Of a stretch of 64,000 nt of DNA, positions 15,136-60,505 are shown piece by piece; the first letter of the stretch is position 1, and every line of letters begins with the position of its first letter. Below the pieces are notes generated by a model, which was not told the DNA's origin, searched no databases, and saw nothing but the letters and a program-made list of their open reading frames with translations. The DNA comes from Selaginella moellendorffii (taxonomy: Eukaryota; Plantae; Lycopodiophyta): positions 135,183 through 199,182 of the forward strand of contig NW_003314277.1 of NCBI RefSeq assembly GCF_000143415.4, given 5' to 3'. The position numbers were made by a program, and so were the translations under genes.

Positions 15136-17580
15136 ATTTAGATCCTGGCTCGTGTCCAGTATGTGTGGCACATCTTGTGCGGTGAAAATGGCCGAAGGTG
15201 AAACTTCTCTAGAGAATGCAAGGTGTGATACTTTGGGACTTTCGTTTTGTTTTGCAATCGAATTCGTACACGGGGATGCTCTCTTGTCTCCACAATAAGC
15301 GTGTTAATGTAATGCCGTTATGAGAGGCCGTCTGACGCATCAAACACGACTATCTCCCCTGTATCACGAGAAAGAAAAAAAGATGAGTTAAACAAGGTTA
15401 AAAAAAGATTTCGTGATCCACTTGAGAGCTAGTTATTTAGTGTGGATTTGGCTAAAAATACACATTTCAAAGGGATTCTCAGTATTGTTGTAATCACACA
15501 TTCAAGTTCTACTACCATCTAGAGGAATTCCCTCTTTCTGATGATGTTATATATGCTCTAACTTCTCAAGATCAACCTTCTAAGTTACCTTCATTCAACA
15601 AGGATGCACTCAATTTGCTTGTGTTTGGAAAGACTAACTAGGATCACTGCAAAGACAAAGAAAACAAATGCACTTTCTAGTCCTCGTTCCTTATTTTGTG
15701 ATGTAAAATGTTGGGAAAAAGTCCAATAATGGCAAGCTAACTCATTCTTGCAAACAATCACAAAAACTTTTGCTAATGAGTGCAAGTATAGAGCTGATTT
15801 GTTGGGAGTTGAGTAAACTTGATGTTAGGTGTTAAGCATCTTTACATGCACTTGGATTCTTTGCTTCTTTGCAAGCAACTAATTGGGAAGCTCCAGCTTC
15901 AACATCTTGGATTGCAAGTTTTTCATAAGAAACTACCATCACCTCTTGGCTCAATTGTCATCATGGAATTCCTTACACATAAAATGGTGTCAATGATATG
16001 CCAATGAAGCAAGGGTTGTAGAAGACTAAGAGAATCCATCCCACGGATTGCAACACAATAATGAACTTGATCAAATTGAAGATGCAAGTCTTTGTTGGCT
16101 GAATTGGCAACAATTCTTTTGGATTTGCCTATTAAATGCAGTGAGCAAAAACTATTGTTTGCCGGGGAGGAGTTGACAATGAGGGGAAAGCACTAAAAGA
16201 TTTCCTTGGTGAGTTCATAGATGTTTTTGCATGAGACTACTTGGAGCTGAAAGGTATTTCATCAGACATTATTATCCACAATTGAAGCAAGCTCAAAGTC
16301 AACTCAATGAGCCATTGGTCAAAAAAAAAGTTCACAAGTTGATGAGGAAGGCACATGTATTCCTTTTCCCCCTTAAGGAATGCTTGGTGATCTACAAAAT
16401 CAAACTTCTCTCTCGATTTTTTTTTGTCTCTTCTCTCTCTTTTTTTGTTCCTGGCATTCATGGAAGCTGATAAAGGATTGCAACACAGACATTTTCTAGA
16501 ACACCAATGTAAAAATGCCAATTGAATGTTTTCTGTCAATTGTTCTGAGTACAAAAGGATTGTATGTAACACAGTGATTGGTACAAGACAGGAGGAGATA
16601 TTTGCTATGGAAGAGGGGCTTGAGCAAGCCACATGAGATTTCTTTTAAAATCTGAGCCTAAGCTTTGTCAACAGGGACAACATCACTTTTCTGGTATATC
16701 CAAAAAGTGATTTTTATCACTGTTGATTGGATTAGATTTGTTTATTGAATGACAGCTTCAACCAGTTTGACAGATTCAACTTGGTACTACAAGCTATCAA
16801 GTATTTTTCAAAGTCATAGCCTGTTTATTCAAGATATATAGACATCTTTGGAGTCACCACAGCACCTGTTTAGGCACAGGACCATATTATAAAGCTTCCT
16901 GATGTTTTCTAAGCTAAGTGATAAGTTTACCTGGCACCATCACAGCACGACCATGGCTGATAATTAATTGCAGCTCACTAGGAGCTTGGTGGAGAGTAGT
17001 TGCAAGCTGTTTTGCCAAGGTGTTGTTGTGGAAGTAGTGCTGCAGAGATGACATGATGGTGCGATCCAATAAGGATGGTGTGCCAAGAGATGGCAAGAGA
17101 TGGTGAGATGCTTGAACTTACATAGCTTCAAGCACCAGGTGGTTTTACAATTTAACTGCCTGCAGCTTCTTTGAGCTTGTACACAGGAAGAGCTATAGGA
17201 TCAGTCATTGTCTTAAAGCTAGAAGGCAATGGAGGAACTTAATTGACTGTTGAACGGGCTACGACCAGGTTCTCCATGTTGAGCAGGCGGGAGTTATGCG
17301 TTCTTGACAATCTACATCCGAGAAGGAAAGAAAAAGCAGAAAACTAAAGATTGACTGGCAAAGGGAGAAAAAGAAACCCAACCGCCTCGACAATGAAAGT
17401 TCTCCGGTGTCATCGCATAAACGAGGTCGTTAGTAGTACTTATGAAAGACTTGCCTTACCATAGCTGGCAGCCAGTACATTGAGTGGTCCCACAAGCAGT
17501 CACACATTCAAGATTCATAAACAGAAGATGAGGTGATTTCAACTATAAAAACCATTATCAATCCAACACTCACCCACACC

Positions 17581-18549
17581 ATGGCTAATCTTACTGTTCT
17601 CATCCTTTTCTCTGTCTTTGCCATCTTTTTTGTGTGCGCTGCAGGACTCACTCACTCAAACGAATGGTTCAATGGCAAAGATTCAGTTCCATTCGCACTC
17701 GAAAACTTCATCGCTTCTCCAGTTTCGCTGGATCTTGGTAGCAGCGGCTTCTGCAGTGCTGCTGGCATTCGGTGCAACGACACTGGCCTTTCACCCTGTT
17801 CCAACAAGCCTTACCGCCGAAGACTCCTCGATGCGGAGCTCGATGGCGCCCTGGTCTGCGACCCTGTTCGATCGATTCAGGTTGTCAACACTCGCCGCTT
17901 CTTCCATCTCAGTGAATTCACCCCGGGGTCTCTTTTCACGTTCCCAGCCTTCTACAATGCCCCAGCCACGCGATTCCTCGCTCATCCCCTCGCCGCGAAG
18001 ATCTCATTGGACCCGCAGGAGCTTCCGGTCACCATGGCCACTCTCCATATTGTCAACGCCCCCGTCATGAAGCTCTTCATGGTGTCGACGCTCTCTGCGT
18101 GCGCGCATGCTCCATCTTCCATCGAGACCAAGAGATGCACGCCGAGCTTGAGAGAGCTCTCTAGCTTCGTTTCGGTAGCCCTGAACACCACGTCCCCGGT
18201 GGTTCGCGGCTCCAAAGGCACTTCCCACATGGATCAGCTGCTAGCCAACAAGCAAGTGCAAGTTCGCAAGCTGGCAGAAATCGTCCCGGTTTCAAAGCCT
18301 CACGTCGCGTGTCACAGGATGGCGTATCCTTTCATGCTGCACTACTGCCACATGGTACAAGGTACCCACGTTTTCTCTGTTACGGTTGCCGCCCACCATG
18401 ATGATGAAGTCGAATACTTGCTGGAGTGTCACACCATCACGAAGTACATGAAGCTCGGCAATGCGATCCTCAACCAGCTGAGTCTCAAGCCAGGAGAAGG
18501 CGAGTTCTGCCACCTTGTTGAATCGTCCGCTCTCATCTTCACAAACTAA
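17581..18549 (+). CDS. BURP-domain protein, secreted, intronless
   Basis: Signal peptide (MANLTVLILFSVFAIFFVCAAG), FF start of the BURP domain, ETKRC, and four CH dipeptides (VACH, HYCH, LECH, EFCH). Confidence 0.9.
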   Translation: MANLTVLILFSVFAIFFVCAAGLTHSNEWFNGKDSVPFALENFIASPVSLDLGSSGFCSAAGIRCNDTGLSPCSNKPYRRRLLDAELDGALVCDPVRSIQVVNTRRFFHLSEFTPGSLFTFPAFYNAPATRFLAHPLAAKISLDPQELPVTMATLHIVNAPVMKLFMVSTLSACAHAPSSIETKRCTPSLRELSSFVSVALNTTSPVVRGSKGTSHMDQLLANKQVQVRKLAEIVPVSKPHVACHRMAYPFMLHYCHMVQGTHVFSVTVAAHHDDEVEYLLECHTITKYMKLGNAILNQLSLKPGEGEFCHLVESSALIFTN

Positions 18550-18727
18550 AAGTGACCAAGTGTTCTCTTGCTACCACTCTCATCAAACTGTGTTCTCTAT
18601 ATACGCTCTTGGCAATATATGCTGTAATGTTACATAGACACTAGGTCTCCATTTTTGTCCTATGAGGGCGAGGGGCAACACTCTTTGTGCGTGGAAAGGT
18701 TGGTTTTAAAAACTAGCAGCGCTAGCC

Positions 18728-22927
<4,200 letters not shown>

Positions 22928-25089: not shown

Positions 25090-26213
25090 AGTTCCATGCA
25101 GCCTCTGAAGAGATGCCCGGGGACCTTCGTTCTTCCAAATAAGCCTGAAAGCATCGATGGCGCCACGGTACTTCACAGCTTCGCCCGAAGTCATCATCAT
25201 CCTGCGCCGCACGGTATCGAACGGATAGACAGTGAGACTGGAGAAAGTTGTCACTACCCATCCAACAGCGAAACTAGCAGCAAAGCTTCCCTGTGTCAAA
25301 ACTTCGGAGGTTTAGAAGTAAAGCTCGAGAGAAAGATAATCGTACCTGGAGTGATCCCACCAGAACAAACGGCTTCACCGAATCATAGATGCCGAAGTAG
25401 AGGCTGCGGTATAGAACGATGCCAACTATGGAAGCGCTGAAGCCTCTGTACAAACCAAAAACACCATCGGTTGCCAGAGTTTTCTTGTATACATCGGTAA
25501 GACCTTGGTACTGGCGAGCACCGGTCTTCTCCAATTGTATGGTGTCGTTTGCGAGCCTGGTACGTGCAAAATCGAGCGAGTAGACAAGCATGGAGGATAT
25601 CACACCAGCTGCTCCTCCAGCCGCCATGTTTCCAATTATCCATTTGCAGTGGCCATCGCGTTCTCTGCTCAGGCCGAAGAGATCCTTGATGTAATCCTTG
25701 AAAGCAAAGTTGAAAGCCTGCGAGGTTCACGTGAGAGGGAAGAAGTCTTGTGCAAGACAATCCATTAAGAAACAAGAAAGTTTTGCATACCTGTGTTGGA
25801 AGGTAGCGTATGACATTGGTGAGGTTTCCTCTCCACAAGGCCAACACGCCTTCTTCTCTAACAACGCGGTGCAAGCAGTCTCCCACTCCTTTGTATGGTT
25901 GAGTAAGGCGGCCTGAAGGAATCCAAAAGAGAAACAAAAACTTAGCGACGAGGAACAGAACTGCGAAAGAAAAAGCCTCACCGCTCTTGAGAAGCTCGCT
26001 TTGGTTCTGGATCAACAGCTTCACTCGCTCGAGAGGCGCGGCGGCACTCTTGGACACTGCAGCAGCAACACCACCTGAGATAAAATCGAGAGCAAAGAAG
26101 TGACGCTGCCGCTCGATAGCCGAGCACACTACGAGCGGAGGGCGACGATCAACTGTAGAAGAAAATCCCTGCTTCCTTCCCTCGTTGCGGGAACTCTGGC
26201 GCATTTCCACCAT
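25090..26213 (-). CDS. ADP/ATP carrier, ER-ANT1-like (3' end runs into the N gap)
   Basis: [33 protein letters not shown]|AFNFAFKD, and [12 protein letters not shown] (ADP/ATP carrier RRRMMM signature). SIVGIVLYR and KPFVLVGSL resemble ER-ANT1 from memory. Confidence 0.88.
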
Positions 26214-26419
26214 TCCCTGCTTCTTCTGGTCATGGTGCCATGACCGCAAACCCTAAGCTGGAGCCACAGAAAAAGAAGATGACGTCGTGACTCACTGGAC
26301 CACTGCTGGAGCTTAAAAATTCGTTACATTGAGAGAAAAGAATTTGACAAATCCGTACCCCAGGAGCAATTTTTCCACAAAAACCATTCAAGCCGAGGAG
26401 TTGCTTTGCTTGTTGCTCC

Positions 26420-27909: not shown

Positions 27910-30900
27910 ATGGACGACGAGCAGGAGCAGGAGCAGCGATTAGAGCTAGAGGTAGCGGCAGCGGTGGATGGAAGCAAAGATGGGAATGGAGTGGCCGAAA
28001 TGGAGCGAGACGAAAATCTTGGAGCTGTGGAGCAAGCTGGGGAGGAAAAAATCGTCTCGGGAGAACAGGTCAAGGAGGAATTAAGTGGCAAATTAGAGGA
28101 ATCGCCAGCGGCGGCTGATGGAATGGAAGTTTCAGAGCAGGACGAAGCTCCTGCCAAGGATGGAGCGGCTACTTTCGGTGAGAATTGTGAGGAGAAGACG
28201 GAATTACAGCGAGAGATGGAGCTTTTCGAAGCGGCCGAGAAAGAGGATGAAGCCAACATTCTCTCGAAAGCGAACGAGAAGAAGAGGGCTCAGGAGCAGC
28301 CTGCTCAAGAAAGTCGTAAGAAGCGGGGAAGGAAGGCTTCCGTGAAAGCGTCATTTAGGAAAGAAGAGGATGACGTTTGTTTTGTGTGTTTCGACGGTGG
28401 GGATCTAATTCTGTGCGATCAAAGGTGACTATTTTTTTGGTTTGGTAGGACACTTCGACTAAGTTTGTTTTTACAGGACATGCCCAAAGGCGTACCATCT
28501 TGGCTGTATCGGAAGGGACCAAGAGTTTTTCAGGAAGAAAGGAAACTGGCACTGCGGTTTGTGTTTTAGCATGCTTGACTTTATGTAACCTCTTCCTTGT
28601 GTAGGCTGGCATTTTTGCGATGGAGAAAACTGTTCGAAGAAAGCAAGCTTTCGGTGCTATACTTGTCCAAAAGCTTACTGCGCTGGATGCAGGAGTCGAC
28701 ACAGTTTTAGTTTATTTGACAAGAAGAAAGGCTTGTGCGAGGAGTGCGTGAACTACGTTAAAATGATTGAGCTCAATGAAACCGTAAACGCTGAAGGGGT
28801 AAGTTCACAACAATTAATAGTTCTAGCAAACGTCTAACTCGATGTGTTCTTTCAGAACACGGTCGATTTTAATGACCGCGACACATACGAATGTCTGTTC
28901 AAAGAATACTGGGAGGATTTGAAGGCGAAAGAGACGATCGTTTTGCCAGAATTTGACAAGGACGGAAAGTTCGTGAATGCTACACCTGCAGCAGATAGTG
29001 ACGGGCGGTCGGACGACGAGGCTTCAAGTTCCGAGTCAGAAACGTCTGCAGCTGTGGTGATGGCCGACGACGAAGATGTTCCTTTTGGTACTGGGATAAG
29101 GAAAGAAAGGAAGACGAAGATCCTGAATGCTCTCTCTGACGAGTTCAAGTGCACTGTAAATCAGGAGCAGAAGGAGCAACCTCTTACCGAGGATGTCGAT
29201 GAGAAAGGAGAAGACGAAGAGGAAGAAGAAGAGCAGGACGAGGAAGAGGAAGAGGAAGGAGAGGCTTACAAGCCTACGGTATTTGATGGCTGGGCGTCAA
29301 AGGAGATGATCAGTTTTATCAAGTTTATGAAGGAAGATCCAAAGACACCAATGAAGAGGCCCGCAGTTAACAAGCTTTTATGGGATCACATTAAGGCCAA
29401 CAAGCTCCAGAATCCGCGGAAGAAAACCATCATAAGATGCGACGAACAACTCCGGTCTCTCTTCGGCAAGAAGGCCGTGACTCAGCGCAGTTTGATGAAA
29501 TACCTCCACAACCATTTTCCGAGCAAAGCTTCAAAGACGGAACAAGCCGAAAGCCAAGTCGATGACGAGAAGGGAAAGAAAAACAAGCGAAGCCTCAAGG
29601 GAGACGAGTATGCGGCGATAAACCAGAGCAACATTAGTCATGTATATCTAAGAAGGGCTCTACTGGAGGACATGCTTGGCGATCCTAACTTTGAGCAGAA
29701 GGTGGTGGGCACGTTCGTAAGGATAAGGGTTCCAGGCAAAAATGATATGTGCTACCGTCTTGTTCAAATAGTTGGTAAGTAGTTTTTATTATATGCGTGG
29801 CTCGCTAACGATGTCGTATGGTTGCAGGTACCAGATTACAAGCTGAGGAGTACAAAGCGGGCAAAAAAAGTACGAAGATCGTTTTACTAATCACGAACCT
29901 ACAAAAGAAGGAGGACCTGACAATTGACTTAGTATCAAATCAGGATTTCACCGAGGTATGCGTGTTGACCATTACAAAATGCCGGATGCGTTACAGTAAT
30001 TACTGCAGGAGGAGTGCGCGCGTTTGCGGCAGAGCATCAAATGGGGGTTCATCCCGGCTCCAACTGTGGTATGCATTTTGCTGTGAGATTTTGCGTGTTC
30101 ATCTGGATCTAATTAAATCCATGACAGGGAGACTTTGAACGTAAAGCGCTGTCTATTCGAGAAGCGAAGCTTAATGATGTAAATGAAAATGAGCGCTTTC
30201 GCTTTGTTAATCTTTTATCTCTGTTGTTGCAGTGGTTCGAGACAGAAACCTCAAGGTTAACCGCGCTCAGGGATCGTGCCAATGAGAAGGGTCGAAAGAA
30301 AGAATATCCTTTTTGTTTTGTTGTCGAAATTGTTGCCAGCCCAGTGTAAGTTTCCTTAACTCCGTTGTACATTGAGGGAATGCGTGGAGAAGCTTCAAAG
30401 GATTTCGAATCAAGACTATCGCTTGAAGGAGTTGAGCAAGGTCCCAGCGTTTGAAGCGGACGCTACTATGGACCCCGAGCACGAGGAGCCAAGCGACGAA
30501 CCAAACCCAACTGAGCAGCCAGGTAAGTCGATGTCTGTTCGCTGGTACAGTGACAGCTCACTTTTTTTCTTGCAGCTGAAGTAGCCAGCACTGCCGAGAA
30601 GAGCCGAAGTATTAGAGAAGAGCATCAGCCTAACAAATGGGACAGGAGAAACGATCCGCCAGCTTTCACAAAGCAAGACAGTTTCAACAAGAGAGACGGT
30701 TTTGAGAGAGGATGGGACAGGGATCACGATTGGAGAAACGAGGGAAGATCAAACGGGAAGTTTGGTGGACATAAGAGCGCAGAACAGAAGGAGCCGGTTT
30801 ACGGAGGAGGGTCTTTACCACTCTCACGGCCTCCACCACCGCCACCTCGGCCTCCACATCTTTCAACGCCTCCAGCTAACATGAACGCGCCGCCGCCACC

Positions 30901-31543
30901 CGAGATAGCAGAGAAGGAGAAGGCATGGTTCTACCAAGACCCCAAGGCTATAGTCCAAGGCCCCTTCTCGTTCGAGCAGCTCAGGAAGTGGAGCTTGACG
31001 GGGCTGTTCCCGGCGGATCTCAAAGTCTGGAGGTCCGGCCAGCGAGAGCAGGCAGTTTTGCTAGTGGAAGCTCTAGCGGCGGCGCGTACGCCGGTGGCAG
31101 CGCCGGCGGCGGCTTGGGGTGCTCCACCACCTCCGGCGCTAGACACTGGACGGACAGGGGGCTGGGATAACACAGGTGGTGGTAGAAGTGGCTGGAACGC
31201 TTCGTCTAGAACAGGAGATTGGAGTAGCACAGGTGGTCATGAACGAGTAGGAGGAGGAGCTCCATCGCCGCCAAGTGACCCGTGGAGCCAGAATCCAGGG
31301 AGGTCCGACGGTGGTGGCGGCGGCGGTGGTAACTTCAACGATGGTCCGTGGGGTGCTCCTCCACAAGCACCGCACAGGAGTCCCGGATGGAGAGACCAGT
31401 CTCAAAACAGCGGCTGGGTGGACAGGGGCGATAGCTTTCGGAGCCCGAGAGTGCCTCACCAGCAGAAGAAAGGCACGCCATGCCGGTTCTACCAGAAGGG
31501 ATTTTGCAGGAACGGCGATTCGTGCCCATTCCAGCACAGTTGA
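27910..31543 (+). CDS. NERD-like PHD-SWIB-Plus3-GYF-CCCH protein
   Basis: PHD (DVCFVCFDGGDLILCD|CPKAYH), SWIB (GWASKEM...LWDHIKANKLQNP...IRCDEQLRSLFG), Plus3 (VVGTFVRIRV), GYF (WFYQDPKAIVQGPFS), WG/GW-rich tail and CCCH (CRFYQKGFCRNGDSCPFQH). Confidence 0.92.
30304..30370 (+). other. U12-type (minor spliceosome) AT-AC intron
   Basis: 5' ATATCCTTT, branch point TTTCCTTAAC (30351-30360) and 3' AC. Removal gives in-frame GRKKE|LRECVEKL. Confidence 0.93.
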
Positions 31544-31931
31544 GAGGAACGATTCATCGTAAGTTTCGGAAGTTTGGATCCTTCGTGTACCAGGTACGTT
31601 CGTTTTCCAGAGGACTGTACAAACGAGAACAAGAGATATATGTGACAGCTTCTTCTAGATCCCATCTCTCGAGGACATCGTCTCTCGGCCTCTGTTTTCC
31701 AGGCTCCCGTCCTGGAAAACAGGGGCCTTTTTTTTTTGGTACGGTCGTGATGAAGGTCTACCGTACTTTTGCCGTANNNNNNNNNNNNNNNNNNNNNNNN
31801 NNNNNNNNNNNNNNNNNNNNNNNNNNNNNNNNNNNNNNNNNNNNNNNNNNNNNNNNNNNNNNNNNNNNNNNNNNNNCTAGGGGAATCTATAGACTCACTT
31901 TTTTGCTTTGCTGGATTGAGCGAGTGGAGCT

Positions 31932-33587
31932 ATGGCGAAGCTCCTGGGCCGTTTCCCGGTGGCGTTTGGGGATTTCCAGCTCGCCAAGGGATCTGGCGAT
32001 GGCGCGCTCCAGCCGCCGATGGTGCGCGTGTTCTATCCGAGCGCCGCACAGCGGCAATCCAAGAAATGCCGCTGGCTGCCCGGCGTCGCCTACGCGTTTG
32101 GATACCTGTGCAATATGGCGCGGCCGAAGACGGCGATGCGCAGGGCGATGCTGTGGATCTTTGCGGGTAATCGTCTCCCTGTGGATGATCTCCTCGATTC
32201 TCTTGATTTATTCTATATTTTTTCTCGCAGGTGTGTTTTATGCAATGCTCTGGCCTGGGGCAGTGATCGCGGCCGCGGCAGCGCAGCCAATTTTGGTAGA
32301 GGATGGGGAGGAGAGATTCCCAGTGGTGGTTTTTTCCCATGGTTTGTGGGCTTGTAGAGCAACTTACAGCACGCTTTGCTCGGATCTAGCGTCGTATGGG
32401 TACAGTTATGTCGTTCTTCGAGCTTTTCTAGCTTTTCTTTCTGTTTGTTCGTGAATCTTTTCTAAACTTTGGGAAGTTGTCATGGCAGTCGTTGTGGCTC
32501 CGGAGCATTTAGATGGCTCCGCGAGCATTGCCAGTTACATTGACAACAAGGGATCGGAGAGATGGATTGAGCACAAGTACGCCAATTCAAACTTGCACGA
32601 TCTGAAAATGAAGGATCGCGGCATGCAACTCAAACAGGTGTGTCCAGGAAACTTTTTTTCTTTTTTCCTCCTCTTTGGTTCTTGTAGTTTCATGCTTTTT
32701 ACAATGTATCAGAGAGTCAAGGAGATTGAGCTCGTCCTTCATGGGCTCGACGAGCTAAACAATGGAAGTATAAGCTCCAACTTAGTCACTGGAGACTATA
32801 GCTTGGACGTTACCATGTTCAAAGGGAGGATGGACTTGGATCGAATAGCCATTGCTGGACATTCTTTTGGCGGAGCAACTGCGATCATAGCGCCTGGAGC
32901 TATCACCACCCGTTTCAAGTGCTCGCTCGGGCTAGACGTCTGGTGGGAGCCCGTGGAAAAAGTAAGCCCGCTTGATCTTTGATCTTCTCATGAGACTTTT
33001 TGCTCCGCAGGTAGACTATGAGAAGGTCTCTGGACATGTTCCCGTTCTCCTGCTTAACACTGAAAACTTCGATTGGAAGGCCTTGAAAGAAGCTCGTCTT
33101 GTGTATCTCAATGCAAGAGCTGGGACGAAAACCAAGGACGGGCAATCTCTTGAAACCAAGCTCTTGACGATCAAGGTCAGCTTTGCTTGATTTCTCTCAC
33201 TCGGGGAAGTTTACATTCATCTTCTCGCATTTGTAGCACACCGAGCACCAGGATCAATCTGATTTTCCATTGTTTCTTACGATGATGTCCAAGAAACTCA
33301 AGTAAGTTCGTACTGGTTCAAAGCTCGCTCCATGTTTCTCTTCGTTTTCTTTCCAAGGTTGTCTGGAGATCTCGACGTCCAGCTCGCGAAAGATATCAAC
33401 AGTAGAGCTTGCCTTGCGTTCCTTCAAAATCATATGCTTGCTTCTGGTAAAACTCTCGTCACTAAATCCTTCATGGAATTTATTTCCACGTTCTTTGTGT
33501 GTGTGTGTATGTACAGGCAAAAGGTATCCATCGTCCTTCCGTCCTGTGGAAAGCGATAACGAGTTCCTCGTGGGCGCAAGCATTTAA
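31932..33587 (+). CDS. PAF-acetylhydrolase-like alpha/beta hydrolase
   Basis: VRVFYPS, VVVFSHGL...TYSTLCSDLASYG, EHLDGSA, IAGHSFGGAT (nucleophile elbow), LDVW and HQDQSDFP; multi-exon GT-AG. Confidence 0.88.
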
Positions 33588-35604
33588 AACAACTCCAAAG
33601 GATATTCTATGAATAAACTCAAGACGTGGATATTCGGGCATATTGGATATTCATATTCATTAGAATGGAGATTTCTGTGAGAGCTCCTTTCTGGAGAGCC
33701 AACAGCGACAATGTACTATATTGGATGTGGATATGATCAATGCAGTTGTCTTAGAGTTCGCAATTTGCAAAGTACTTAAGTTTTTTGTCACTTGCAATCC
33801 ACAAAAGCTACACCTTATCCAAACTTATACGTGATAGTGCTTTAATTAATAAACTTTCTTAAACACCTAGTGTAGCTATTAAATGCAATTAGTGTGTGAA
33901 TAGACTTTTGCTTATATATAGGAAAGAGATTCAATCTGGTCGATATGCTACACTAATATTAGCGTTGTAGCAGTGGATGTATTTTCATAAATATTTTTCA
34001 TGTCATTATAAACTGTAAATTATTTTAGTTTCAATTAAAATAAATATTCATGAATAATTCATAATAAAAATAATTAAACTATTCGCATTCGGCTTCATGA
34101 TACCGCAAAGAATCAATAGGCTCATCAAACTTGGCAGGCAAGTTTGACACCACAGACCATACCACTTCATTTTCTTCCATTCATTGGAGCCCTCCCCATT
34201 CAAACATCATTGAATGGGCTGGTTTTGAAGAGGTGTCGGAGCTGCAGCTTCCCAATAAAGGTTCGGTTCATTGGACTTAAATAGTCACCTTCTGAGCAGC
34301 TGGTGATGGATTGATGAAAATGCATTTCTTCAAAACCAGCCCATGGTGTTCCTTCCAAAGCTTCTTGCTGCTCTTTGAATGCAGTTCCAAGACTCGTCCA
34401 AAAACAATATGATCAGCTACCCTGAAGATAAAGATGGAAGTCCTCTGGACTGATGAAAGAGGACAAGCTTGCTGTACAAGACAGGCGCACAATCTAGCTG
34501 GGCTACCTCATTTTCCTTGCTCAGAATCACGATATGGCTGCTTGCCTTCCACCGCTTGCTCATATTCCTCCTCCTGCATGTCGTTGTGCAAGAAGCAATC
34601 CAAGACATACAAGCAAGTGGTGAGCTGGATGCTGCCTCAAGAGTCTTCGGGGCACACTAACAAACATGCGCCACACAAAATACCCAAGCCAGGCAAATGC
34701 TTCGACGTATCTTTTGCTTCCAGGCCCGCATTATACGTACCAACGCAAGATCCGTGGAGAAGAATGTCGCTGTGTCAAGCCATCCCATAACAATAACTGC
34801 GGTGCAAAGCAAGAGCCCCGAAGAAATGCCCGTGCGAGGCAAAGGCTGCAACGTTCCCTGGCATTCTTGATACCACCAGCCAGCATCCCTCGAAGCATGA
34901 GCACACAGACATAGATCGATCGATGGCCCTGCTTTTACTCACCACCACCGGAGCTTCTCATGGAGTAGCAGCAGCCACGCCCGATCGCCATACCCTCATT
35001 GCGGCTGGGAAGAGCTCTGGCCTCGAGAGATCCCGGCCAGAGGATTCATGGCAAGCTTGTCAGCGATCGTGGGTCGGGAGAGCCATGGATTTGCGCTCCC
35101 AGGCTGTGTCCCATCTCTTCCAAGCCTGCCACTTCTCGGATCACAAAATCTGTTTGATCTTGTTTAATGTTTTGAGGTGGTCTTGGAACTCGTTTTTCTT
35201 TCTTTCTCGTGATACATACAGCAGAGATAGTCGAGTTTGATGCGCCGGAAGTGCTCTCGAGTAAACCTTCCAGGAATGTTTGACGAAGATTAACGGTATT
35301 ACATTAACACTCAAGACAAAAGTGCATCCCCGTGTGCCGTTTCTATTGCGAAACGAAACGAAAGTCCCAAAGTATCACACCTTGCATTCTCCCGAGAAGT
35401 CTTACTTCGGCCATTTTCACCGCACAAGATGTGCGACACATACAGTGGACACGAGCCAGGATCTAGATTTTGCCACGTACGATCCCCATACTACATAAAT
35501 ACCTGTGTGCCATTTGCCATAGCCATCTCAAACGTAGAAGAAAGTAGCTCATCGTAAATTCATTGCTCACTGATTTTTTGCTAGCTAACTCCCAGCTCAA
35601 AACA

Positions 35605-36353
35605 ATGGCACTCGTCACAGGCAGTGGTATCGCAGCTCTCTCTTCTTCCTCGCTCATCTCCAACAAGCTCCGTGTCCAATCGAAATCGCCCACAAGCTTC
35701 ATCGGCACAAGAAATCTAGTAGTAGTAAGAGCGTCCTCGAACAAATCAAGGGATGGTGGTGATGGCGGCATCAGTGGCGTTCTTGACGGCACCAAGAAGG
35801 AGATCACCCGCGAGGAGGTGCTCAAGAACCAGGCCGAGAACGAGTCGGAGAAGCGCTCCGTGTTTGGAGCCGTCCCATCGTCCGGATCGCTCTATCCCAG
35901 GCCAGAGGTCGAGAGGCGACCAGAGACTGGAGATCGATCGTTCCCCAGCTTGATGGCGTTCGATGGAGCCGGCCCGGAAACGATCAACGGAAGACTGGTA
36001 AGTGATTGTTGGTTGTTCTTCTAGATCTTGGCAAGTAACTTCGTGAACTTGACAAGCAGGCAATGATTGGATTGGTGTGGGCATTCGCGGTGGAGCGAAT
36101 GACGGGACAAACCGTGGCGGAGCAGCTCTACTCGCCGGGGAGCACTGGTCTTTTCCATTTCTTGGCAGTGGCACAGCTATTCGCGTACGCGTCGCTGGTG
36201 CCCATGTTTAAGGGCGAGAGCCCGGACAGCAGATCGTTTGGGCCATTTAGAGCCATGGCGGAGCGCTGGAATGGGCGAACCGCGATGCTTGGCTTCCTCG
36301 CCTTGGTGATCACCGAGTTTTTTACCAAGACTCCAGTGTTCCACATGATGTAA
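35605..36353 (+). CDS. ELIP: Early light-induced protein (ELIP) copy 2, exons 35605-35997 and 36060-36353
   Basis: Near-identical protein to the 14226-14985 copy, with the same intron position. Confidence 0.93.
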
Positions 36354-36466
36354 ATTTAATAGTTCTTAAACTGTTCTAGATTTCATTCTTTACAAAGATT
36401 GCTGCGTGAGAACGATGTGTTGGAAAATGGATCTGGACAGGCCGGGGATTGAACCTAGGACCGATG

Positions 36467-36790
36467 TGTTGGAAAATGGATCTGGACAGGCCGGGGATTG
36501 AACCTAGGACCTCCTACACCGGTGCCAGGTGCTCTACCACTGAGCTACCTGCCCTGGTTGTGTGTATCTTCAGCTTAGTTCTAACACTCCCCCCTAAGCT
36601 GAACACGCCACACATCCCTACCTGCCAGTCCATGCCTACCATAGGCCATCCAACCATAGCTCCGATACCATGTTGGAAAATGGATCTGGACAGGCTGGGG
36701 ATTGAACCTAGGACCTCCTACACCGGTGCCAGGTGCTCTACCACTGAGCTACCTGCCCTGGTTGTGTGTATCTTCAGCTTAGTTCTAACA
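36467..36790 (-). mobile_element. 324-bp miniature LTR retroelement (TRIM/SMART size) with tRNA-containing LTRs
   Basis: 120-bp LTRs 36467-36586 and 36671-36790 (TGTT...AACA, one mismatch seen); TSD CGATG; PBS minus TGGTATCGGAGC abutting the LTR; PPT minus AGGGGGGAG; 84-bp interior. Confidence 0.93.
36483..36554 (-). ncRNA. tRNA-like sequence (Ala-like scaffold, aberrant anticodon loop) inside the TRIM LTR; second copy at 36687-36758
   Basis: GGGCAGG TA GCTC AGTGGTA GAGC A CCTGG CACCGGT GTAGG AGGTC CTAGG TTCAATC CCCGG CCTGTCC A: 72 nt with a 7-bp acceptor stem, D arm, A box and B box. Confidence 0.85.
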
Positions 36791-37855
36791 CGATGCTCCT
36801 TGGACTATACAAAGATTGTGGCTTCATCGGATTCCTCACCCGCAAGAACCCTAAAAATTTATGGAGCTAGAAATTCGCTAGAAATTTCATTATTTTATGT
36901 ATAAGTTTACTGTGCTGTAACACTTCAGGGTGACCAAAATGACTGATCTGCTGCAAAAAAACATTGACAAGCTTCTTAAGTTAAAAGCAATCTTACCACA
37001 TTCTCTTATTTTTTAAGATTGAGAAAGCTCGCAAGTAGAAGGTGAAAGGTTCAAAACATTCTTAATACCCTCTTCCAACGAAAGTGTACTGATTCTTATC
37101 TTCCAACTAAGTAGAATAAATGGAAGCTTACCTCTCCTAGTTGGCCAGCAATCTAGTTTTTGTCCTTAGCCACAGAATAGATGTTAAAGTAGCAATGAGG
37201 AATTGCCTTTCAATGGAAAGAATTTTATCAAGTGCAATAGCAGAATGGTTTCCAAGTTTATGAAACAATAGATTTGGAAATTAAAATTTGGTAGCAATCA
37301 AAATGTATTATATATATTTTTTCAATGTTAATTTTTATAATAAAAATTTTGTTTTATTCTTAATACTTCTTATAAAATTATTTTTATTTATTACCTTTTA
37401 TGAAGATTTGAAGGTTACCAAAACCAAGTGATTTACAAAAGTTACTTATATTGTATAATAAAATTAAAAACTCTAAAGATGAATATTTCTACACACACAA
37501 AAAGTATATGGATATTTTCCTTTACTAATAAAGGAATATTATCATTTGAAGAACATTAAAGTTTCATTTCCACAAAAACTTCAACATAACCTTTTTTAGT
37601 GTATATTTAAAAAATAATCATCATTACAATGTCCTACCTATCAATTCTGTTATCATATAGTACCAGTAATTTTTGTAATGCCACTTTTTTTGTAATACTC
37701 TAAATTTTTAAATCATAATAATTAAAATAGATTATAAAAAGAAAAAATAATTCATTTTTATTATAAAAAATAGCTTAATAAATGCCAAAAACCCTAAAAT
37801 ATTTATAATAATATATAACTGTGAGGAAAGGGAATACAAAAAACATGCATATCAA

Positions 37856-42754: not shown

Positions 42755-43610
42755 TCACACGGCTTGCTTCAAGCTCCCCACGACTAAACACCCAACGAGC
42801 ACCGTCTTCCACGAGCAGCTATCCGGCACAAACGGCATATCACTCACGAGCTCCCGTGCTTGATCCATGAGGCCGGAACGCGCTAGCATTTCCGCCATGC
42901 AAACGCAGTGATCCCTGGTATACGCCACCCCAAAGTCCGTCGCCACCGAGAAGAAGCACTGCCTCGCGTTGCTCAAGTCCCCCGCGTGAGCACTCACCGA
43001 GAGAATGCTCACAAACGTAACGTCGTTTGGATGCACGCCTTCCAAGCACATCCGGAAGAACAGCTCCATGGCCGCGTCGAAAAGTCCATTGTCGGCATAG
43101 ATCCCAATCGTCGCGCTCCACAGCACGACGTTCTTCTCGCGAGCCGCGTCGAAGATCTCGCAAGCGGCGGCGAGGCGAGCAGATCGGCCGTGCATGCTCA
43201 CAAGTGCGGTGGAGACTGAGCTATCACTGCGACAACCCGAGGTGGATATCAAATCATGGAGCAACCTTGCCTCGGATGGCGCGAGGTGAGAAGCTAAGAC
43301 GCCGATAAACGTAGCTCTGTCCGCCTCAAATCCTTCCAGATCCATCTTTGCTAGAAGCTCGAGAGCTCGCAAGCTTTCTCCATTTGCTGCGTGAGCTGAG
43401 ATCATGGCGTTCCAGCTAGCCGTGTCCCAAACGTGCTTCCCGGGTAAGTCCCTTCTGCGCGAAGTCCATGAGCATGAGCGTCCAGGCATGAGATTGAACA
43501 AACCCCTCGCAAGATCAAAGTGAGCGTTTTGAGTGTATGCTGTGATCATCGCGTTCCAGGCCACCTGGTTCTTCTCTTTGATCCTGTCGAAAGCGTTGAC
43601 TCCTTTCGAA
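42755..43610 (-). pseudogene. PLS-class PPR fragment
   Basis: AWNAMITAY, KNVVLWSATIG, VHPNDVTFVSILS, DHCVCMAEMLARSG and MPFVPDSCSWKTVL. No ATG start, and truncated within the E domain. Confidence 0.8.
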
Positions 43611-53235: not shown

Positions 53236-54049
53236 TGTAAGCCACAAATTTTTCCTTTCCAATTTGCCAGCTTACCTCGTTTATCTGACCAACACTGCCT
53301 TGGCTTGTGCTAAGTTCCCTTGCCAAGGTTCTCGCCTATTGTACCAGCTCCTACTTGGTCCTACTTGGTTTCAGCTACTCACTGCACGAGCAACGGAGTG
53401 TTAGCCATCCATCTACGGATTCCCAAATCTCTCCCAATCCCCCTCCCCGAGTTAGACTGGACTTAAGGTTCGGCTACACTCCCCGTAGGCACAAACAGCC
53501 AAGCACACCAAGCCTCCAGGTTCCTAACACCCCTTGGTACAACAAGACTTGATCATGGGACCCTCTAAATCCCAAGCATTGGGTGCAGCACTTGCTTCGG
53601 GACGTCGGGGCGAAACACCGTGGCCTAACGGCCCAGTATGGGTACCTCTACCCCCCCACTTCCATCCCAAAGGGAAGGTCCAAGCCCCTAGGAAGGGCAA
53701 GGACCAATGAGCCGCATGGTACTCAAGTGGGGCACCACTCCACATGAGCCAAGAGCACCGCAGTCAGTTTCCTTTTCGGGAGTGGGAGCTGCTCTTGAGC
53801 ACTTCCTTGGATGGCCCCTCCGGCACCAACCAAGTCCATGCTCACTCCCACCCAAGGCCCCTTGGTCCCAGTCCCAACCTCAAGTCAGTTTGGAAGCCCC
53901 ACTGGAGAGTTCCTTCAAAACTGGTTCCTGGACCTCACTATCCCTACTATACTTTTGGAACCCCCTGCAGCCCCCCACCCCCCCCCCCTGGGAGACGCAC
54001 GCTTTGGGCTTTCACCCCTTGACCTGTATTAGTACTCGGACTTAGTCTC

Positions 54050-54270
54050 TGGCTTGATCTCGGATTCGACTTCGGATTTAGTCTCGGACTCGATCTCGGA
54101 CTCGATCTTGGACCCGATCTCGGACTCAATCTCGGACCCGTCCTCAGACTCGACCTCAGTCTCGTTCTCAGACCCGATTTCGGATCTCGGACTCCGTCTC
54201 GAACTCGGTCTCGAACTCGGACTCGAACTCGGTCCCCGAGTCGGTCTCGGACTCAATTCCGGACTCTATC
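54050..54270. repeat. CTCGGA/CTCGAT hexamer tandem repeat inside the Gypsy LTR, running into the N gap
   Basis: 6-nt periodicity is directly visible. Confidence 0.9.
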
Positions 54271-54802
54271 TNNNNNNNNNNNNNNNNNNNNNNNNNNNNN
54301 NNNNNNNNNNNNNNNNNNNNNNNNNNNNNNNNNNNNNNNNNNNNNNNNNNNNNNNNNNNNNNNNNNNNNNNNNNNNNNNNNNNNNNNNNNNNNNNNNNNN
54401 NNNNNNNNNNNNNNNNNNNNNNNNNNNNNNNNNNNNNNNNNNNNNNNNNNNNNNNNNNNNNNNNNNNNNNNNNNNNNNNNNNNNNNNNNNNNNNNNNNNN
54501 NNNNNNNNNNNNNNNNNNNNNNNNNNNNNNNNNNNNNNNNNNNNNNNNNNNNNNNNNNNNNNNNNNNNNNNNNNNNNNNNNNNNNNNNNNNNNNNNNNNN
54601 NNNNNNNNNNNNNNNNNNNNNNNNNNNNNNNNNNNNNNNACCCAACCTCCATAGAATACGTCTACGGATTCGACATCCCCACAGGGAGTCGGGCGTAGCT
54701 CCCTACGCCTGGTCGATCTAGCTAACCCATGCTAATTAGCTTACCTTCGGCGTGCCTTCAGGTCCTAACATATGCCATTGCTCAACTTCACAAATTGATA
54801 CT

Positions 54803-57800
54803 TTAATTGAACTTTGCATAAGTACATAGAGTTCTGCCTTGCAGAAATTCCTCCACTAGATCTCGCGCGTTCGCTATGTTCTCTTCCGGTTCCCATGTTG
54901 CTTTGCAGTGTGGAAATCCTTTCCACTTCACATGGAACTCTCTCACTTCGCGTCCTTGTCGCTTGCTCTTGCGCGCATTAAGGATGGCCTCGACTTCGTA
55001 TTCCTCTTCCCCTTGGATAACCTCAGGTAAAGGTCTTACTTGGTCCTTGCGAAGCAGATCCTCAAAATACGGCTTGAGTAAGTTCATGTGGAACACGGGA
55101 TGCATCTTCCCCATCTCTTGAGGAAGTCGGAGTCGGTAAGCCACTTTACCGATTCGAGCCTCAATCTCGTAAGGCCCCGCGAACCTGCTTAAGGAACTCA
55201 AGATCAACTCATTTACAGGAATACATGCATTTTTACCTTTGGGTCAACTTCCGGCTGATCCCACTTGGTAGCCTGAGGTTTTTGGTGTTCAGCCACACCT
55301 TCTCCCCAGCTTGGAACTCTACATCCCGGCGCTTCTGGTTCGCGTACTTAGTTTGCCTTTGTTGAGCTTGTTTCAAGGAATCCCTCACTAGATTCCAAAT
55401 GTTGAGTCTTTCCGCCGTGAATGCCTTTATTGCGGGTAACTCTCCATGATACTCGGCCACACCGAGTTCCACAGGACCTTCTATAGCTCGCCCATTGATG
55501 ACTTCCCATGGACTCACCCCGATACTCGAATGTGGTGAGTTGTTATAACACATTTCCACAAGCCCCAAATGACTTACCCAATTGGTCTGGTCTCCCGAGA
55601 CATAGCATCGCAAATAATCCTCCAGCTGCTTATTCACCCTTTCCGTTTGTCCGTCTGTCAAGAAGTGTTAGTGTCACTAAACTTGACTTAATACCTCATA
55701 CATGTTTGTGGGTGATAGGCTGTGCTGAATTTCAACTTAGTGCGATATTGTTCCAGGAGGGTCCTCCAGAACCTACTAGTGAAGATCTTATTTCGATCTG
55801 AGATGATCTCTTCCGGCCTTCCCCGCACTCGAACCACTTGTTCAAAGAACAGCTTCGCCACACCTTCTGCATCCACTTCCGTTGTGGTGGGTATGAAATG
55901 TGCCATTTTCGAAAATCGGTCCACCACCACGAATATCGCATCAAACCCCTTGCTTGGGGGAAGTCCCGTGATGAAGTCCATCTGTAAGCAACCAAAGGGA
56001 ACGATTCGAGAGACGATCCATAGGGGTTCAAATATAGAAGGAAAGGGCCCATGAACAAGAGTGCACCCCCTTTTCTAATCGGTTAAGGGTCTTGGGATAG
56101 TTGGAGTTAAGCGTCCTTGGGTTTGAATAGTACTGGGCTGGGTGACCTCCCGGGAAGTCCAAACTCAGGAGGTTTACATTTGGTATCAGAGGGGTCTCGG
56201 GTCCGACTCTGTTGGTTGGCTAGGGGAATCGCACCACATATTGATTGACATCTGACTGGTCCAGTTTGCTCCCGCTGGGCTCGACCCGAGGGGTAGGGTG
56301 TCAAGAGAGCGGGGCTCTCGGGAGAGCTGCGGCTCTCAGCTTCCGTTCACGAGGGCGTGAACTTGCAGGGAAGCGTGGTGGATTGTAAGCAACCAAAGGG
56401 AACGATTCGAAAGACGATCCATAGGGGTTCAAATATAGAGGGAAAGGGCCCATGAACAAGAGTGCACCCCCTTTTCTCATTTGGAATTGGGATGCTTTGC
56501 AACAAGCCCCCACTAGCCTTAGTCACGGCTTTGACCTGCTGACATGTTGGACATGTCTTTATATAGTCTTGGACGTCCTTAGCCATATCTGGCCAATAGT
56601 ACTTCCTCTTGAGTAAGCCCATCGTCTTGGGCACTCCGCCGTGTCCCGCAAGAGGTCTGTCATGACACTCTTCTAAGGCTACCTTCCTTAGTTCCCCTTC
56701 TGGAACATACACCCTCGTTTGCTTGTAATAAATGAGTCCGTTGCGTTCCGCATAGCCTGTTTTCTCTTCCATTGGCAGCTCACCTCTCTGGTGAGCTTCC
56801 CGCGCCTCCAGATTCCTCAACAACACTTCTTGTGCTAGACCATCGTTCTCATATGCTGTCCGCACATCGTCCCAGAAGGTTGCTGTTGCGCTGGATATCG
56901 CCAACCTCAAACTCGCTTTTCGACTTAGCGCATCTGCCACGATGTTGCTCTTCCCAGGCTTGTACAGAATCTCGCAATCAAACTCGGCCAAGGCATTGGC
57001 CCACCAACCTTGTTTCCCTCTCAGGTCGGGCTGTGACAAGAAGTGTTTCGTTGCCACATTGTCCGTGTAAACCTTGAAGTGTCTCCCAAGGTAGTGTCGC
57101 TACTCCTTGAGCGCCTTGACCACCGCAAACAATTCCATCTCGTGGGCAGGCCACTTCCATTGAGCCTTGTCCAACTTCTTCGAGAAGAACACTACTGGAT
57201 GGTTGTCTTGCTTCAAAACTGCGCCAAACACAAAGTCCGAAGCATCCGTTTCTACCTCAAAGTCCTTACCAAAGTCTGGTAATGCCAACACAGGAGCCTT
57301 CCTCAACTTCCCTTTGAGGTGGACAAATGCTACCTCGCATTCTGCTGTCTATACCATCTTCCCTTTTCCTGTTTGGTCCGTTAAGGGCAGGGCTACTCTC
57401 GAATAGTGTCTGATAAACTTTCGGTAGTAGTTGCATAGCCCCAAGAACGCCCTTAACTCATGTACATTCGATAGTCGCTCCCATTCCTGGATCGCTTGGA
57501 CCTTCTCCAGGTCCACCTTGAGCTCGTCCTGGCCCACCACATGCCCGAGAAACTTTACCTCTTGTTGAGGAAAGTCACATTTGCTCTCTTTAGCATACAA
57601 TTTGTGTTCCCTTAGTTTCTTAAACACCTTCGCCAAGTGTTCGGCATGCTCCTCTAGTGTCTCGCTATAGATCAGGATGTCGTCGATATAAACGACCACG
57701 AAGTGATCCAGATAGGGTACAAAGATGTGGTTCATCAACGCCGAAAATGTTGTCGGCGCATTGCACAGCCCAAAGGGCATCACCAGAAACTCAAAGCTCC

Positions 57801-60050
57801 CATACCTCGTTTGACAGGTTGTCTTCTCGACATCTTCCTCAGCTACCCTGATCTGGTAGTATCCTGACCTTAGGTCAATTCTCGAGAAGTATTTTGCCTT
57901 TCCCAACCTATTGAACAGGTCCTCAATCCTTGGCAAAGGGTATTTGTTCTTCTTTATATACTTGTTGAGCAACCGGTAATCTATGCAAATGCGCATAGAT
58001 CCATCTTTCTTTTTCACAAATAACACCGGCGCCCCATACGGCAACTTGCTCAACCTAACATACCCTTTGTCCACCAACTCCTCTAGTTGGCACTTGAGCT
58101 CCTTGAGTTCTTTTTCGTTCAACCGATAGGGGGGATGAACCACCGCCTCAGCACCCTCGACCAGCTCAATCTTATGTTCTATCAGTCGTGCAGGGGGCAA
58201 CCCTGCCGGTAGCTCCTCCGGCATGGTATCCTGGAATTGGTCCAACACCCGTTGGATCACTAAAGGTACTTCTTCCGTTCCTGTCTTTTTATCACTCTTC
58301 ACTGAGAGTAAGCACAAAAAGGTTGCCTTAGTTCCTTTAGTGAGTTGTCCTCTCGTGGACACCAGGTTTAAGTAGGATTCTTTGGCCTTGCTTTGCCCTA
58401 CCTTTAGATCCTGGGCCTCCACCCTAGACCTTCTTCCTTGGGCATTCGCCAGTACCACAAGGTTCCTACCTTGTCCATGTAGGGCTACCATGAACCGATT
58501 GAACCAATCCATTCCGAAGATCACGTCAAATCCCACCATGTCTAACACGGTGAAATCTATGTCTACTTTCCATGTCCCTACTTCGACTCTCGCTTGTCGA
58601 AGTACCTCATCAGTGCTTTGGCTACCTTGAACAAACTCTATAGTCCTTGGTTCACCTAGCCGCTGCACCGTTAGTCCGGCTTGCCGGACTACGTCTGCAG
58701 CCACAAAATTATCCGAAGCACCCGTGTCAATAAGGATCTTAACAAAGCTACCTCCGAGTTTCCCTCGGAGGGCTAGTAGATGTCGCGAATGACTCTCTAC
58801 CAAAGTTGCTTGTGTAATGAGTAACTTCGAGTTAGGGACTGGATCACATACCTCAGTTTGGACTTCACCCGACTTGATGGCCATATTGGCTCTGGCCTTC
58901 TTCGGGTAGGGACATTCCCTCGAAAAGTGTCCCGCTTCACCACAGTTGTAGCATATGTTGTTTCCCACGCTGCTATAAGACTTGACCTTTTTATCCGTGG
59001 GTTTGTCTTTTTTCGCTTGACTCCCCATGTACTCGCTCGCTGGCCACCGGATTTGCCTTTCTGGAACCCCGAGAACTCATTCTTATAGAAACTCTTCTTG
59101 AATTTCCCCCTGCTATACGTTCCCCTTGGTTTGGCCTCTTTGTTAAACGTGGATCCCGACCCCGTCGTGTTCCCCTTTCACAGGTTATCGTTGAAATGCA
59201 CTTTGATGGCCGCATCCAATGCTTCCTTGTAGTTGGTCGGGTTCCAGCGCATCACCTCACCGCTAGCCCAGGTTTGCAAACTTGATATGAAGGCATGGAA
59301 CGCATCCATATCCCCCATGTCCGTGACAAGTATCCTCTTTGCCATGAACCCATTCACATATTCCTGGATGGTTCCAGTCTGCTTCAGCCTACTCAACTCA
59401 TCTCTCAAATGCAGAGTGGCATTCGGAGGAACGTATGTTGCGCGGATCCTCGCCTTTATCATGTCCCAAGTGGCCACTGGTCCTTCGTTGGCCTCCGTCG
59501 TTCTCCACCAAGACTTGGCATTATCTGCCAAGTATGGTTTTGCACATGGGACCTTCTTCGAGTTCGGTAATCGCAACGCTCGGAAGTAGTCCTCCATATC
59601 GTAAAACCAATCCTCCACCACCTTATAGTCATTCACTCCTTTGAAGACCGGTGGGGGCTTTGGTTTGTACTTGGGAACTGCCTGAGGGACTGATTCTACT
59701 TCGGTCTATTCGACCTTGTTTGGTTCTGCCTCAGTCCCTGCCGAAGGGTCCGCACCTTCTGTGCTGCCAGCATCCGCGGTCTTTCTCTTTTTCTTCTGCT
59801 TCTCATCACGCTTTAGCTTGCGTATGAGAGTCTCCAGCAGGGCATTGGTCTGTGCTAACTGTCCTTCTAGCACGTCCAATCGAGCCTTGGACGACCAAAC
59901 CTCGCCACCAGACTCCTGTTTGGAAGTTTCCTCACTAGAGTCCTCCTCATGCAAGGATTCCTTATCCATAGCCTCTTATTCGACTGGAGGCTCCAGCTCC
60001 GGTGGAGGTTCCGTCTCCGCCTGGGTTCGCTTACGCTCTGCCCTTGCCAT
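54803..60050 (-). pseudogene. gag-pol polyprotein (gag, CCHC, protease, RT, RNase H, integrase, chromodomain)
   Basis: [45 protein letters not shown]...CPTCQQ, MDFITGLP, ISDRN, GQTERVN, AGPY, and YEVEAIL..FHVKWKGF. In-frame nonsense codons at about 59977, 59707, 59179, 57350 and 57101, plus one frameshift. Confidence 0.93.
55983..56477 (+). mobile_element. Cassandra-type TRIM (5S rRNA-derived LTR) nested in the Gypsy integrase
   Basis: LTR1 55983-56178 (TGTAA...TTACA) with a 5S-like block at 56105-56160; PBS TGGTATCAGAG at 56181-56191; interior about 205 bp; LTR2 from 56384, truncated at about 56477. Confidence 0.9.
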
Positions 60051-60505
60051 CTCCCAGCAATCCGCCTCTATCCTTCGCTAGAACTGAGAAAAAGGCTCTG
60101 ATACCAAATTGTAAGCCACAAATTTTTCCTTTCCAATTTGCCAGCTTACCTCATCTATCCGACCAACACTGCCTTGGCTTGTGCTAAGTTCCCTTGCCAA
60201 GGTTCTTGTCTATTGTACCAGCTCCTACTTGGTTTCAGCTACTCACTACACGAGCAACGGAGTGTTAACCATCCATCTATGGATTCCTAAATCTTTCCCA
60301 ATCCCCCTCCCCGGGTTAGACTGGACTTAAGGTTTGGCTACACTCCCTGCAGGCACAAGCAGCCAAGCACACCAAGCCTCCAGGTTCTTAACACCCCTTG
60401 GTACAACAAGACTTGATCATGGGACCCTCTAAATTGATTGAGTGCCTGGTGGTGAACTTTGAGGATGATGGGAAGAGAAATACTCTTGGTTTTCGAGTAT
60501 TGGCA

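Follow-up and report, generated by a model that had tools for sequence, protein, structure and literature searches.

Helenus elements are TRIMs with tRNA-derived sequence in their LTRs and have been described as the twin of Cassandra (Kojima 2024, Biology 13:119, PMC10886601). Helenus-1_SMo, the sole Helenus family from a plant, was obtained from assembly v1.0 of Selaginella moellendorffii (PMC10886601; Repbase), and has an LTR of 120 bp, an interior of 85 bp, a total length of 325 bp and a TSD of 5 bp (PMC10886601 section 3.4, Table S1). A Pol III promoter role of the tRNA-derived sequence was inferred in that work from the conservation of the boxes across Helenus families and was called unvalidated (PMC10886601). 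Cassandra is a miniature non-coding LTR element of vascular plants with an initiator-Met PBS, for which TGGTATCAGAGC is quoted as the canonical plant form, and with the Pol III promoter and terminator of a small-RNA gene inside its LTRs (Kalendar et al., PMC7215508). Tandem arrays are known for Cassandra and other TRIMs (PMC7215508, PMC4717578). The genome of S. moellendorffii also contains the TRIM families SmoRetroS1-8 (Gao et al. 2016, PMC4717578), several of which form tandem arrays.

The locus described here lies in a 64,000-nucleotide stretch of DNA (hereafter the window) and consists of an element of 324 bp on the minus strand, two LTRs of 120 bp enclosing an interior of 84 bp, which we assign with high confidence as a recently inserted, structurally intact copy of Helenus-1_SMo (TRIM, class TRIMp3). 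It agrees with that family in host, LTR length, TSD length, PBS, PPT, tRNA-like unit, boxes and terminal TTTT, and differs from it in that the end of the 3' LTR and the TSD were duplicated in tandem (49 bp) after insertion. With Cassandra it shares the general design outlined above and possibly also tandem LTR-interior arrays, given an interior-LTR-interior contig in run X9. However, the promoter of Cassandra is of type 1 (5S), whereas that of the present element is of type 2 (tRNA A and B boxes), and Cassandra measures 565-860 bp (PMC10886601), compared to 324 bp here. No 5S rRNA was detected in the whole window using Rfam at gathering scores, the only matches being two to tRNA, and the element is thus not assigned to Cassandra. 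SINE2 elements are similar in their tRNA-derived head with A and B boxes, in being short and non-coding, and in their need for the reverse transcriptase of another element. Unlike SINE2, which has a LINE-related or A-rich tail behind the head, depends on LINE machinery and lacks LTRs, PBS and PPT, the Helenus element possesses all three together with a 5-bp TSD, and its strand contains no run of four or more A residues. SmoRetroS4, with a total length of 393 bp and an LTR of 104 bp in the accessible part of PMC4717578, is another family, and one of the remaining SmoRetroS entries might equal Helenus-1_SMo.

Architecture and age of the insertion

The following features, all on the minus strand, define the insertion.

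36791..36795, minus strand: 5' TSD, CATCG on the element strand (CGATG on the plus strand), an identical 5-mer being present on both sides
36671..36790, minus strand: 5' LTR, 120 nt, TGTT...AACA, direct repeat at 99%
36587..36670, minus strand: non-coding interior, 84 nt (85 nt in the consensus)
36659..36670, minus strand: PBS, TGGTATCGGAGC, interior positions 1-12, abutting the 5' LTR; the only exact match in the window
36587..36595, minus strand: PPT, AGGGGGGAG, interior positions 76-84, abutting the 3' LTR
36467..36586, minus strand: 3' LTR, 120 nt, from the direct-repeat finding and a script check
36462..36466, minus strand: 3' TSD, CATCG on the element strand
36413..36461, minus strand: extra duplication copy, comprising the TSD and the last 44 nt of the 3' LTR, with a third B-box match

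Short LTRs, a short non-coding interior, a PBS at the 5' LTR and a PPT at the 3' LTR together constitute the architecture of a TRIM, and CATCG on either side provides the 5-bp TSD found in plant and fungal Helenus. An earlier, sequence-only reading of this DNA had recognised a complete tiny LTR element with a CGATG TSD, an initiator-Met PBS, a PPT and an interior of 84 bp, and each of these parts was confirmed by coordinates and by script. The 3' end of initiator tRNA-Met can pair with the PBS along its whole length, one of the pairs being G.U.

The script comparison of the two LTRs gave one difference, which affects a CpG site: the 5' LTR has A at position 95, where the 3' LTR has G. The repeat finder returned 121 nt at 99%, one base more than the LTR, since an adjoining base happens to match. 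A single difference over 120 nt amounts to a K of ~0.008 and, at the commonly used plant substitution rate of 1.3e-8 per site per year, to an age of roughly 0.3 million years, a value that derives from a single CpG transition and has a very wide error. The young insertion deduced in the sequence-only reading from two 120-bp LTRs with a single mismatch is in line with this result. When searched against the window, neither the tRNA head nor the B box or PBS revealed a further copy or longer relative of the element; outside it there were matches at 60095-60106, where a chromovirus has the canonical initiator-Met PBS, and at one site attributable to chance.

A repeat search and a script check showed that 36413-36461 is a perfect copy of 36462-36510, a tandem duplication of 49 bp that includes the B box and the TTTT. 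The span of 36413-36795 originally given for the element does cover it, but the duplication within that span had been left undescribed. Because the duplicated unit contains the TSD, the duplication must postdate the insertion, and the perfect identity of its two units suggests that it is either recent or an assembly slip. No joint that skips 49 or goes back 49 was listed for the contigs of the public runs, which neither confirm nor contradict the duplication.

The flanks of the insertion, 36388-36405 and 36806-36822, have TACAAAGATTG and some neighbouring bases in common. Three exact matches to TACAAAGATTG are present in the window, compared to 0.12 expected, and the element seems to have inserted into a small local repeat that has diverged.

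The tRNA-like unit of the LTRs

Each LTR contains a tRNA-like unit of 72 nt at LTR positions 33-104, oriented in the sense of the element and recognised by both ARAGORN and Rfam (RF00005), together with the following motifs.

36687..36758, minus strand: tRNA-like unit of the 5' LTR, ARAGORN Arg-CCG, Rfam tRNA 49.8 bits
36741-36751, minus strand: A box of the 5' LTR
36699-36708, minus strand: B box of the 5' LTR
36677..36680, minus strand: TTTT of the 5' LTR, candidate Pol III terminator, 7 nt after the tRNA-like unit
36483..36554, minus strand: tRNA-like unit of the 3' LTR, ARAGORN, Rfam tRNA 47.2 bits
36537-36547, minus strand: A box of the 3' LTR
36495-36504, minus strand: B box of the 3' LTR
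36473-36476, minus strand: TTTT of the 3' LTR

Both units exceed the RF00005 gathering score of 29, which answers the proposal in the sequence-only reading that the LTR be checked against a tRNA model. At LTR positions 40-50 lies the A box, TAGCTCAGTGG, and at 83-92 the B box, GGTTCAATCC; both conform to the boxes of Helenus (A, TRGCY...YGG; B, GGTTC), which are likewise part of a tRNA-like sequence in the LTR. The acceptor stem is paired throughout (7 pairs, one of them G-U), as is the D stem (4/4 pairs). Rfam and ARAGORN thereby bear out the earlier description of 72 of the 120 LTR bases as a sense-oriented cloverleaf with A and B boxes and paired acceptor and D stems. The anticodon loop, which had been called aberrant for want of U33, indeed carries A in place of U before the anticodon CCG; the arm as a whole is aberrant, with a 4-bp stem and a 9-nt loop. 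In this copy the T stem has an A.C mismatch. In the minimum-energy structure the cloverleaf is lost, a single hairpin taking the place of two arms while the acceptor and D arms persist. Folding of the tRNA-like unit or of the whole LTR proved no more stable than that of shuffled sequences (z-scores -1.55 and -0.93).

A functional tRNA gene would have an intact T stem and an anticodon arm with a stem of 5 bp and a loop of 7 nt that includes U33; none of these features is found here. We conclude that the unit is not a working tRNA because of its anticodon arm, its T-stem mismatch and its non-cloverleaf fold. Runs of four T residues occur on the element strand only at positions 111-114 of each LTR, 7 nt past the tRNA-like unit, and this is the position at which the terminator of a tRNA gene lies. 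A scan for sigma-70 promoters and hairpin terminators, the models of which are unsuited to plant Pol III units, returned nothing in the element. Judged from its sequence, the unit is most likely a tRNA-derived promoter cassette that has been kept as an internal Pol III promoter through its A and B boxes.

The significance of the locus is mainly one of annotation and matters little beyond it: 36483-36554 and 36687-36758, both called as tRNA, should be treated as Helenus LTR sequence in repeat masking and kept out of counts of tRNA-Arg genes, a practical point that has also been made for rust fungi (PMC10886601).

Comparison with the Helenus-1_SMo consensus

The consensus of Helenus-1_SMo was taken from supplementary file 2 of PMC10886601 and compared with this copy by eye in blocks of 10 letters, not by an alignment program. 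By this comparison the copy shows 9 differences in 325 positions, an identity of ~97% (316/325). Three of 120 positions differ in the 3' LTR (19, 22 and 82) and four of 120 in the 5' LTR (these three and 95), while the interior has one substitution and a 1-nt deletion in a G run (84 vs 85 nt). The substitution at LTR position 82 disrupts a pair of the T stem. Being common to both LTRs, the differences at positions 19, 22 and 82 must come from the source RNA, and position 95 alone was altered after insertion.

As an independent check, contigs from public runs have the consensus letter, rather than that of this copy, in most or all of their depth at five of the differing places, 36505 and its 5'-LTR counterpart 36709, 36568, 36642 and 36696. 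At 36565 the contig depth has C, which corresponds neither to this copy nor to the consensus as read, and leaves this place unconfirmed. Positions 36769 and 36772, the 5'-LTR counterparts of 36565 and 36568, are absent from the contig rows listed.

The host of Helenus-1_SMo, Selaginella moellendorffii, is also that of the window: in a protein search, the BURP ORF at 17533-18546 matched 'BURP domain-containing protein 5 [Selaginella moellendorffii]' with 98% identity. The sequence-only reading knew of no described family of this design and had itself named a catalogue match as the result that would remove its novelty. Since Helenus-1_SMo provides exactly such a match at ~97%, the claim to novelty falls; the design is already known, the family having been published in 2024 from S. 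moellendorffii. Its characterisation of the element as a non-autonomous miniature LTR element with a type 2 Pol III promoter in the LTRs, a counterpart of Cassandra, amounts to the published definition of Helenus and TRIMp3 (PMC10886601).

Further copies in the contigs of public runs

Contigs of four public runs were placed on 35600-37600; they are assembled contigs throughout, and carry neither transcript ends, strand nor level. Run X1 contributed 202 contig pieces, most of them on the element and slightly differing from it. Because of these slight differences, most of the X1 pieces must derive from other copies. Record 20 of run X2 is a contig of 517 nt in which one whole 120-nt LTR stands between 163 and 234 unrelated letters; by its sequence it represents either a solo LTR or one end of an element inserted elsewhere, and its flank recurs in X10. 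Record 22 of X2 represents a copy whose interior lacks 15 nt. The prospect that the element might be single-copy, which would have told against a family in the sequence-only reading, is thus not borne out, as the contigs reveal many further copies with different flanks.

Record 30 of run X9 is an interior-LTR-interior contig in which 36629-36670 is joined to 36467-36648. Such a contig would be expected either from a tandem Helenus array with three or more LTRs or as an artefact of the de Bruijn graph.

Run X1, although labelled "DNA?", reaches a depth of thousands on exons and has zero depth in the intron at 35997-36058 of the neighbouring gene and beyond 37141. Its behaviour is that of an RNA library, since both the intron and the intergenic DNA beyond 37141 are without depth. 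LTR sequences of the family do occur in RNA-like runs, in contigs which cannot tell the transcribing polymerase.

Proposed transcription and life cycle

Having no coding capacity, the element presumably relies in trans on the reverse transcriptase and integrase of an autonomous LTR retrotransposon; the window itself yielded no such partner. Initiator tRNA-Met bound at the PBS would prime the minus strand and the PPT would prime the plus strand, after which integration would yield the 5-bp TSD. From the positions of the motifs we infer a model of our own for the R, U5 and U3 regions, in which Pol III would initiate around LTR position 33, continue past the weak TTTT in the 5' LTR and terminate at its counterpart in the 3' LTR. 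The tRNA-like unit (~positions 33-114) would then act as R, flanked by a U5 of ~6 nt and a U3 of ~32 nt.

It is possible, though less likely than not, that Helenus-1_SMo is still active and transcribed by Pol III in S. moellendorffii, its genomic RNA arising by read-through of the 5'-LTR TTTT with the tRNA-like unit as R. If this is true, then with a single difference between the LTRs of this young copy and with LTR-bearing contigs in RNA-like runs, the family would be the first plant system for testing Pol III transcription of a tRNA-type TRIM.

The terminator presents a caveat to this model, as the TTTT lies within the LTR and upstream of the PBS, and would end a transcript from the 5' LTR before the PBS, and so before its use as a template, unless it is leaky. 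The same fact fits an ordinary TRIM transcribed by Pol II, in which a tRNA-derived SINE or a copy of a tRNA gene is a passenger of the LTR with no role in the genomic RNA. A passenger would also fit the T-stem mismatch that this copy tolerates and the substitutions that contigs of the family show within the tRNA-like unit, among them, in single contigs, one at position 47 (A box) and one at position 87 (B box). Furthermore, the LTR is found in RNA-like runs inside longer contigs of otherwise unrelated sequence, as in record 20 of X2, which fits read-through from host transcripts. We nevertheless consider a Pol II-transcribed element with a passenger rather unlikely. The tRNA-like unit takes up 72 of the 120 bases of the LTR and leaves just 32 nt upstream for a Pol II promoter, and the A- and B-box motifs are conserved in Helenus of fungi, animals and S. 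moellendorffii (PMC10886601 section 3.5). In addition, Cassandra, which has the analogous 5S design, is reported to yield transcripts from its Pol III promoter (PMC10886601 section 4.1).

Origin of the family

Descent of the element from Copia by internal deletion had been proposed in the sequence-only reading. An origin of the family from an autonomous Copia element, by loss of nearly all of the interior with the Copia LTR ends, PBS and PPT kept, appears doubtful to us. The TG..CA ends, the 5-bp TSD and the PBS abutting the LTR are compatible with Copia, but such ends, 5-bp TSDs and initiator-Met PBSs are common to plant Gypsy and Copia elements, and the Ty3-gypsy chromovirus in the window has an initiator-Met PBS as well. 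The reading across the PPT, of 12 residues, is too short for a test, and no long element with these LTRs or this interior was found. Fungal Helenus families do have a PBS region in common with Copia elements (PMC10886601 section 3.6), but the LTRs of TRIMp3 have been argued not to be common to an autonomous partner (PMC10886601), and for S. moellendorffii TRIMs a larger relative has been identified only in the case of SmoRetroS4, where it is a Ty3-gypsy element (PMC4717578). The Copia proposal is therefore unsupported, given features that are common to Gypsy and no longer relative found. The origin proposed for Helenus in the literature is a SINE inserted in the LTR of an existing TRIM, and no partner was named for the plant family (PMC10886601).

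Two tandem copies of a tRNA gene or pseudogene with a spacer, and no retroelement, might be read from two tRNA calls on the same strand 204 bp apart, but this can be dismissed, as the ends are precise TG..CA ends, the PBS and PPT lie exactly at the inner boundaries and a perfect 5-bp TSD at the outer ones, and the 120-nt unit recurs between different flanks at many other loci and matches a published TRIM consensus.

Neighbourhood of the insertion

The Helenus-1_SMo copy is located 60 nt downstream of a light-harvesting-like (ELIP-type) gene at 35600-36353 on the plus strand (Pfam Chloroa_b-bind), the last exon of which is closed by a stop codon at 36351-36353. Contigs of X2 and X10 define the intron of this gene, 62 nt in length with GT..AG ends (35997-36058). 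A young and clean copy near an ELIP-type gene could serve as an insertion marker.

Host genes are also present at 17533-20110, 25383-26249, 28844-29782 and 42755-43564, with BURP-domain, ABC-transporter exon, mitochondrial carrier, SWIB/Plus-3 and PPR products. The protein search gave distant matches only for the ABC-transporter exon and none for the ORF at 31480-32451.

The chromovirus of the Ty3-gypsy type extends over ~54000-60300 on the minus strand, with the zinc knuckle, protease and RT in the ORF at 57349-59028. Its PBS has the canonical form, TGGTATCAGAGC, and is found three bases past the LTR end. The sequence-only reading had in addition noted introns in the integrase of this chromovirus.
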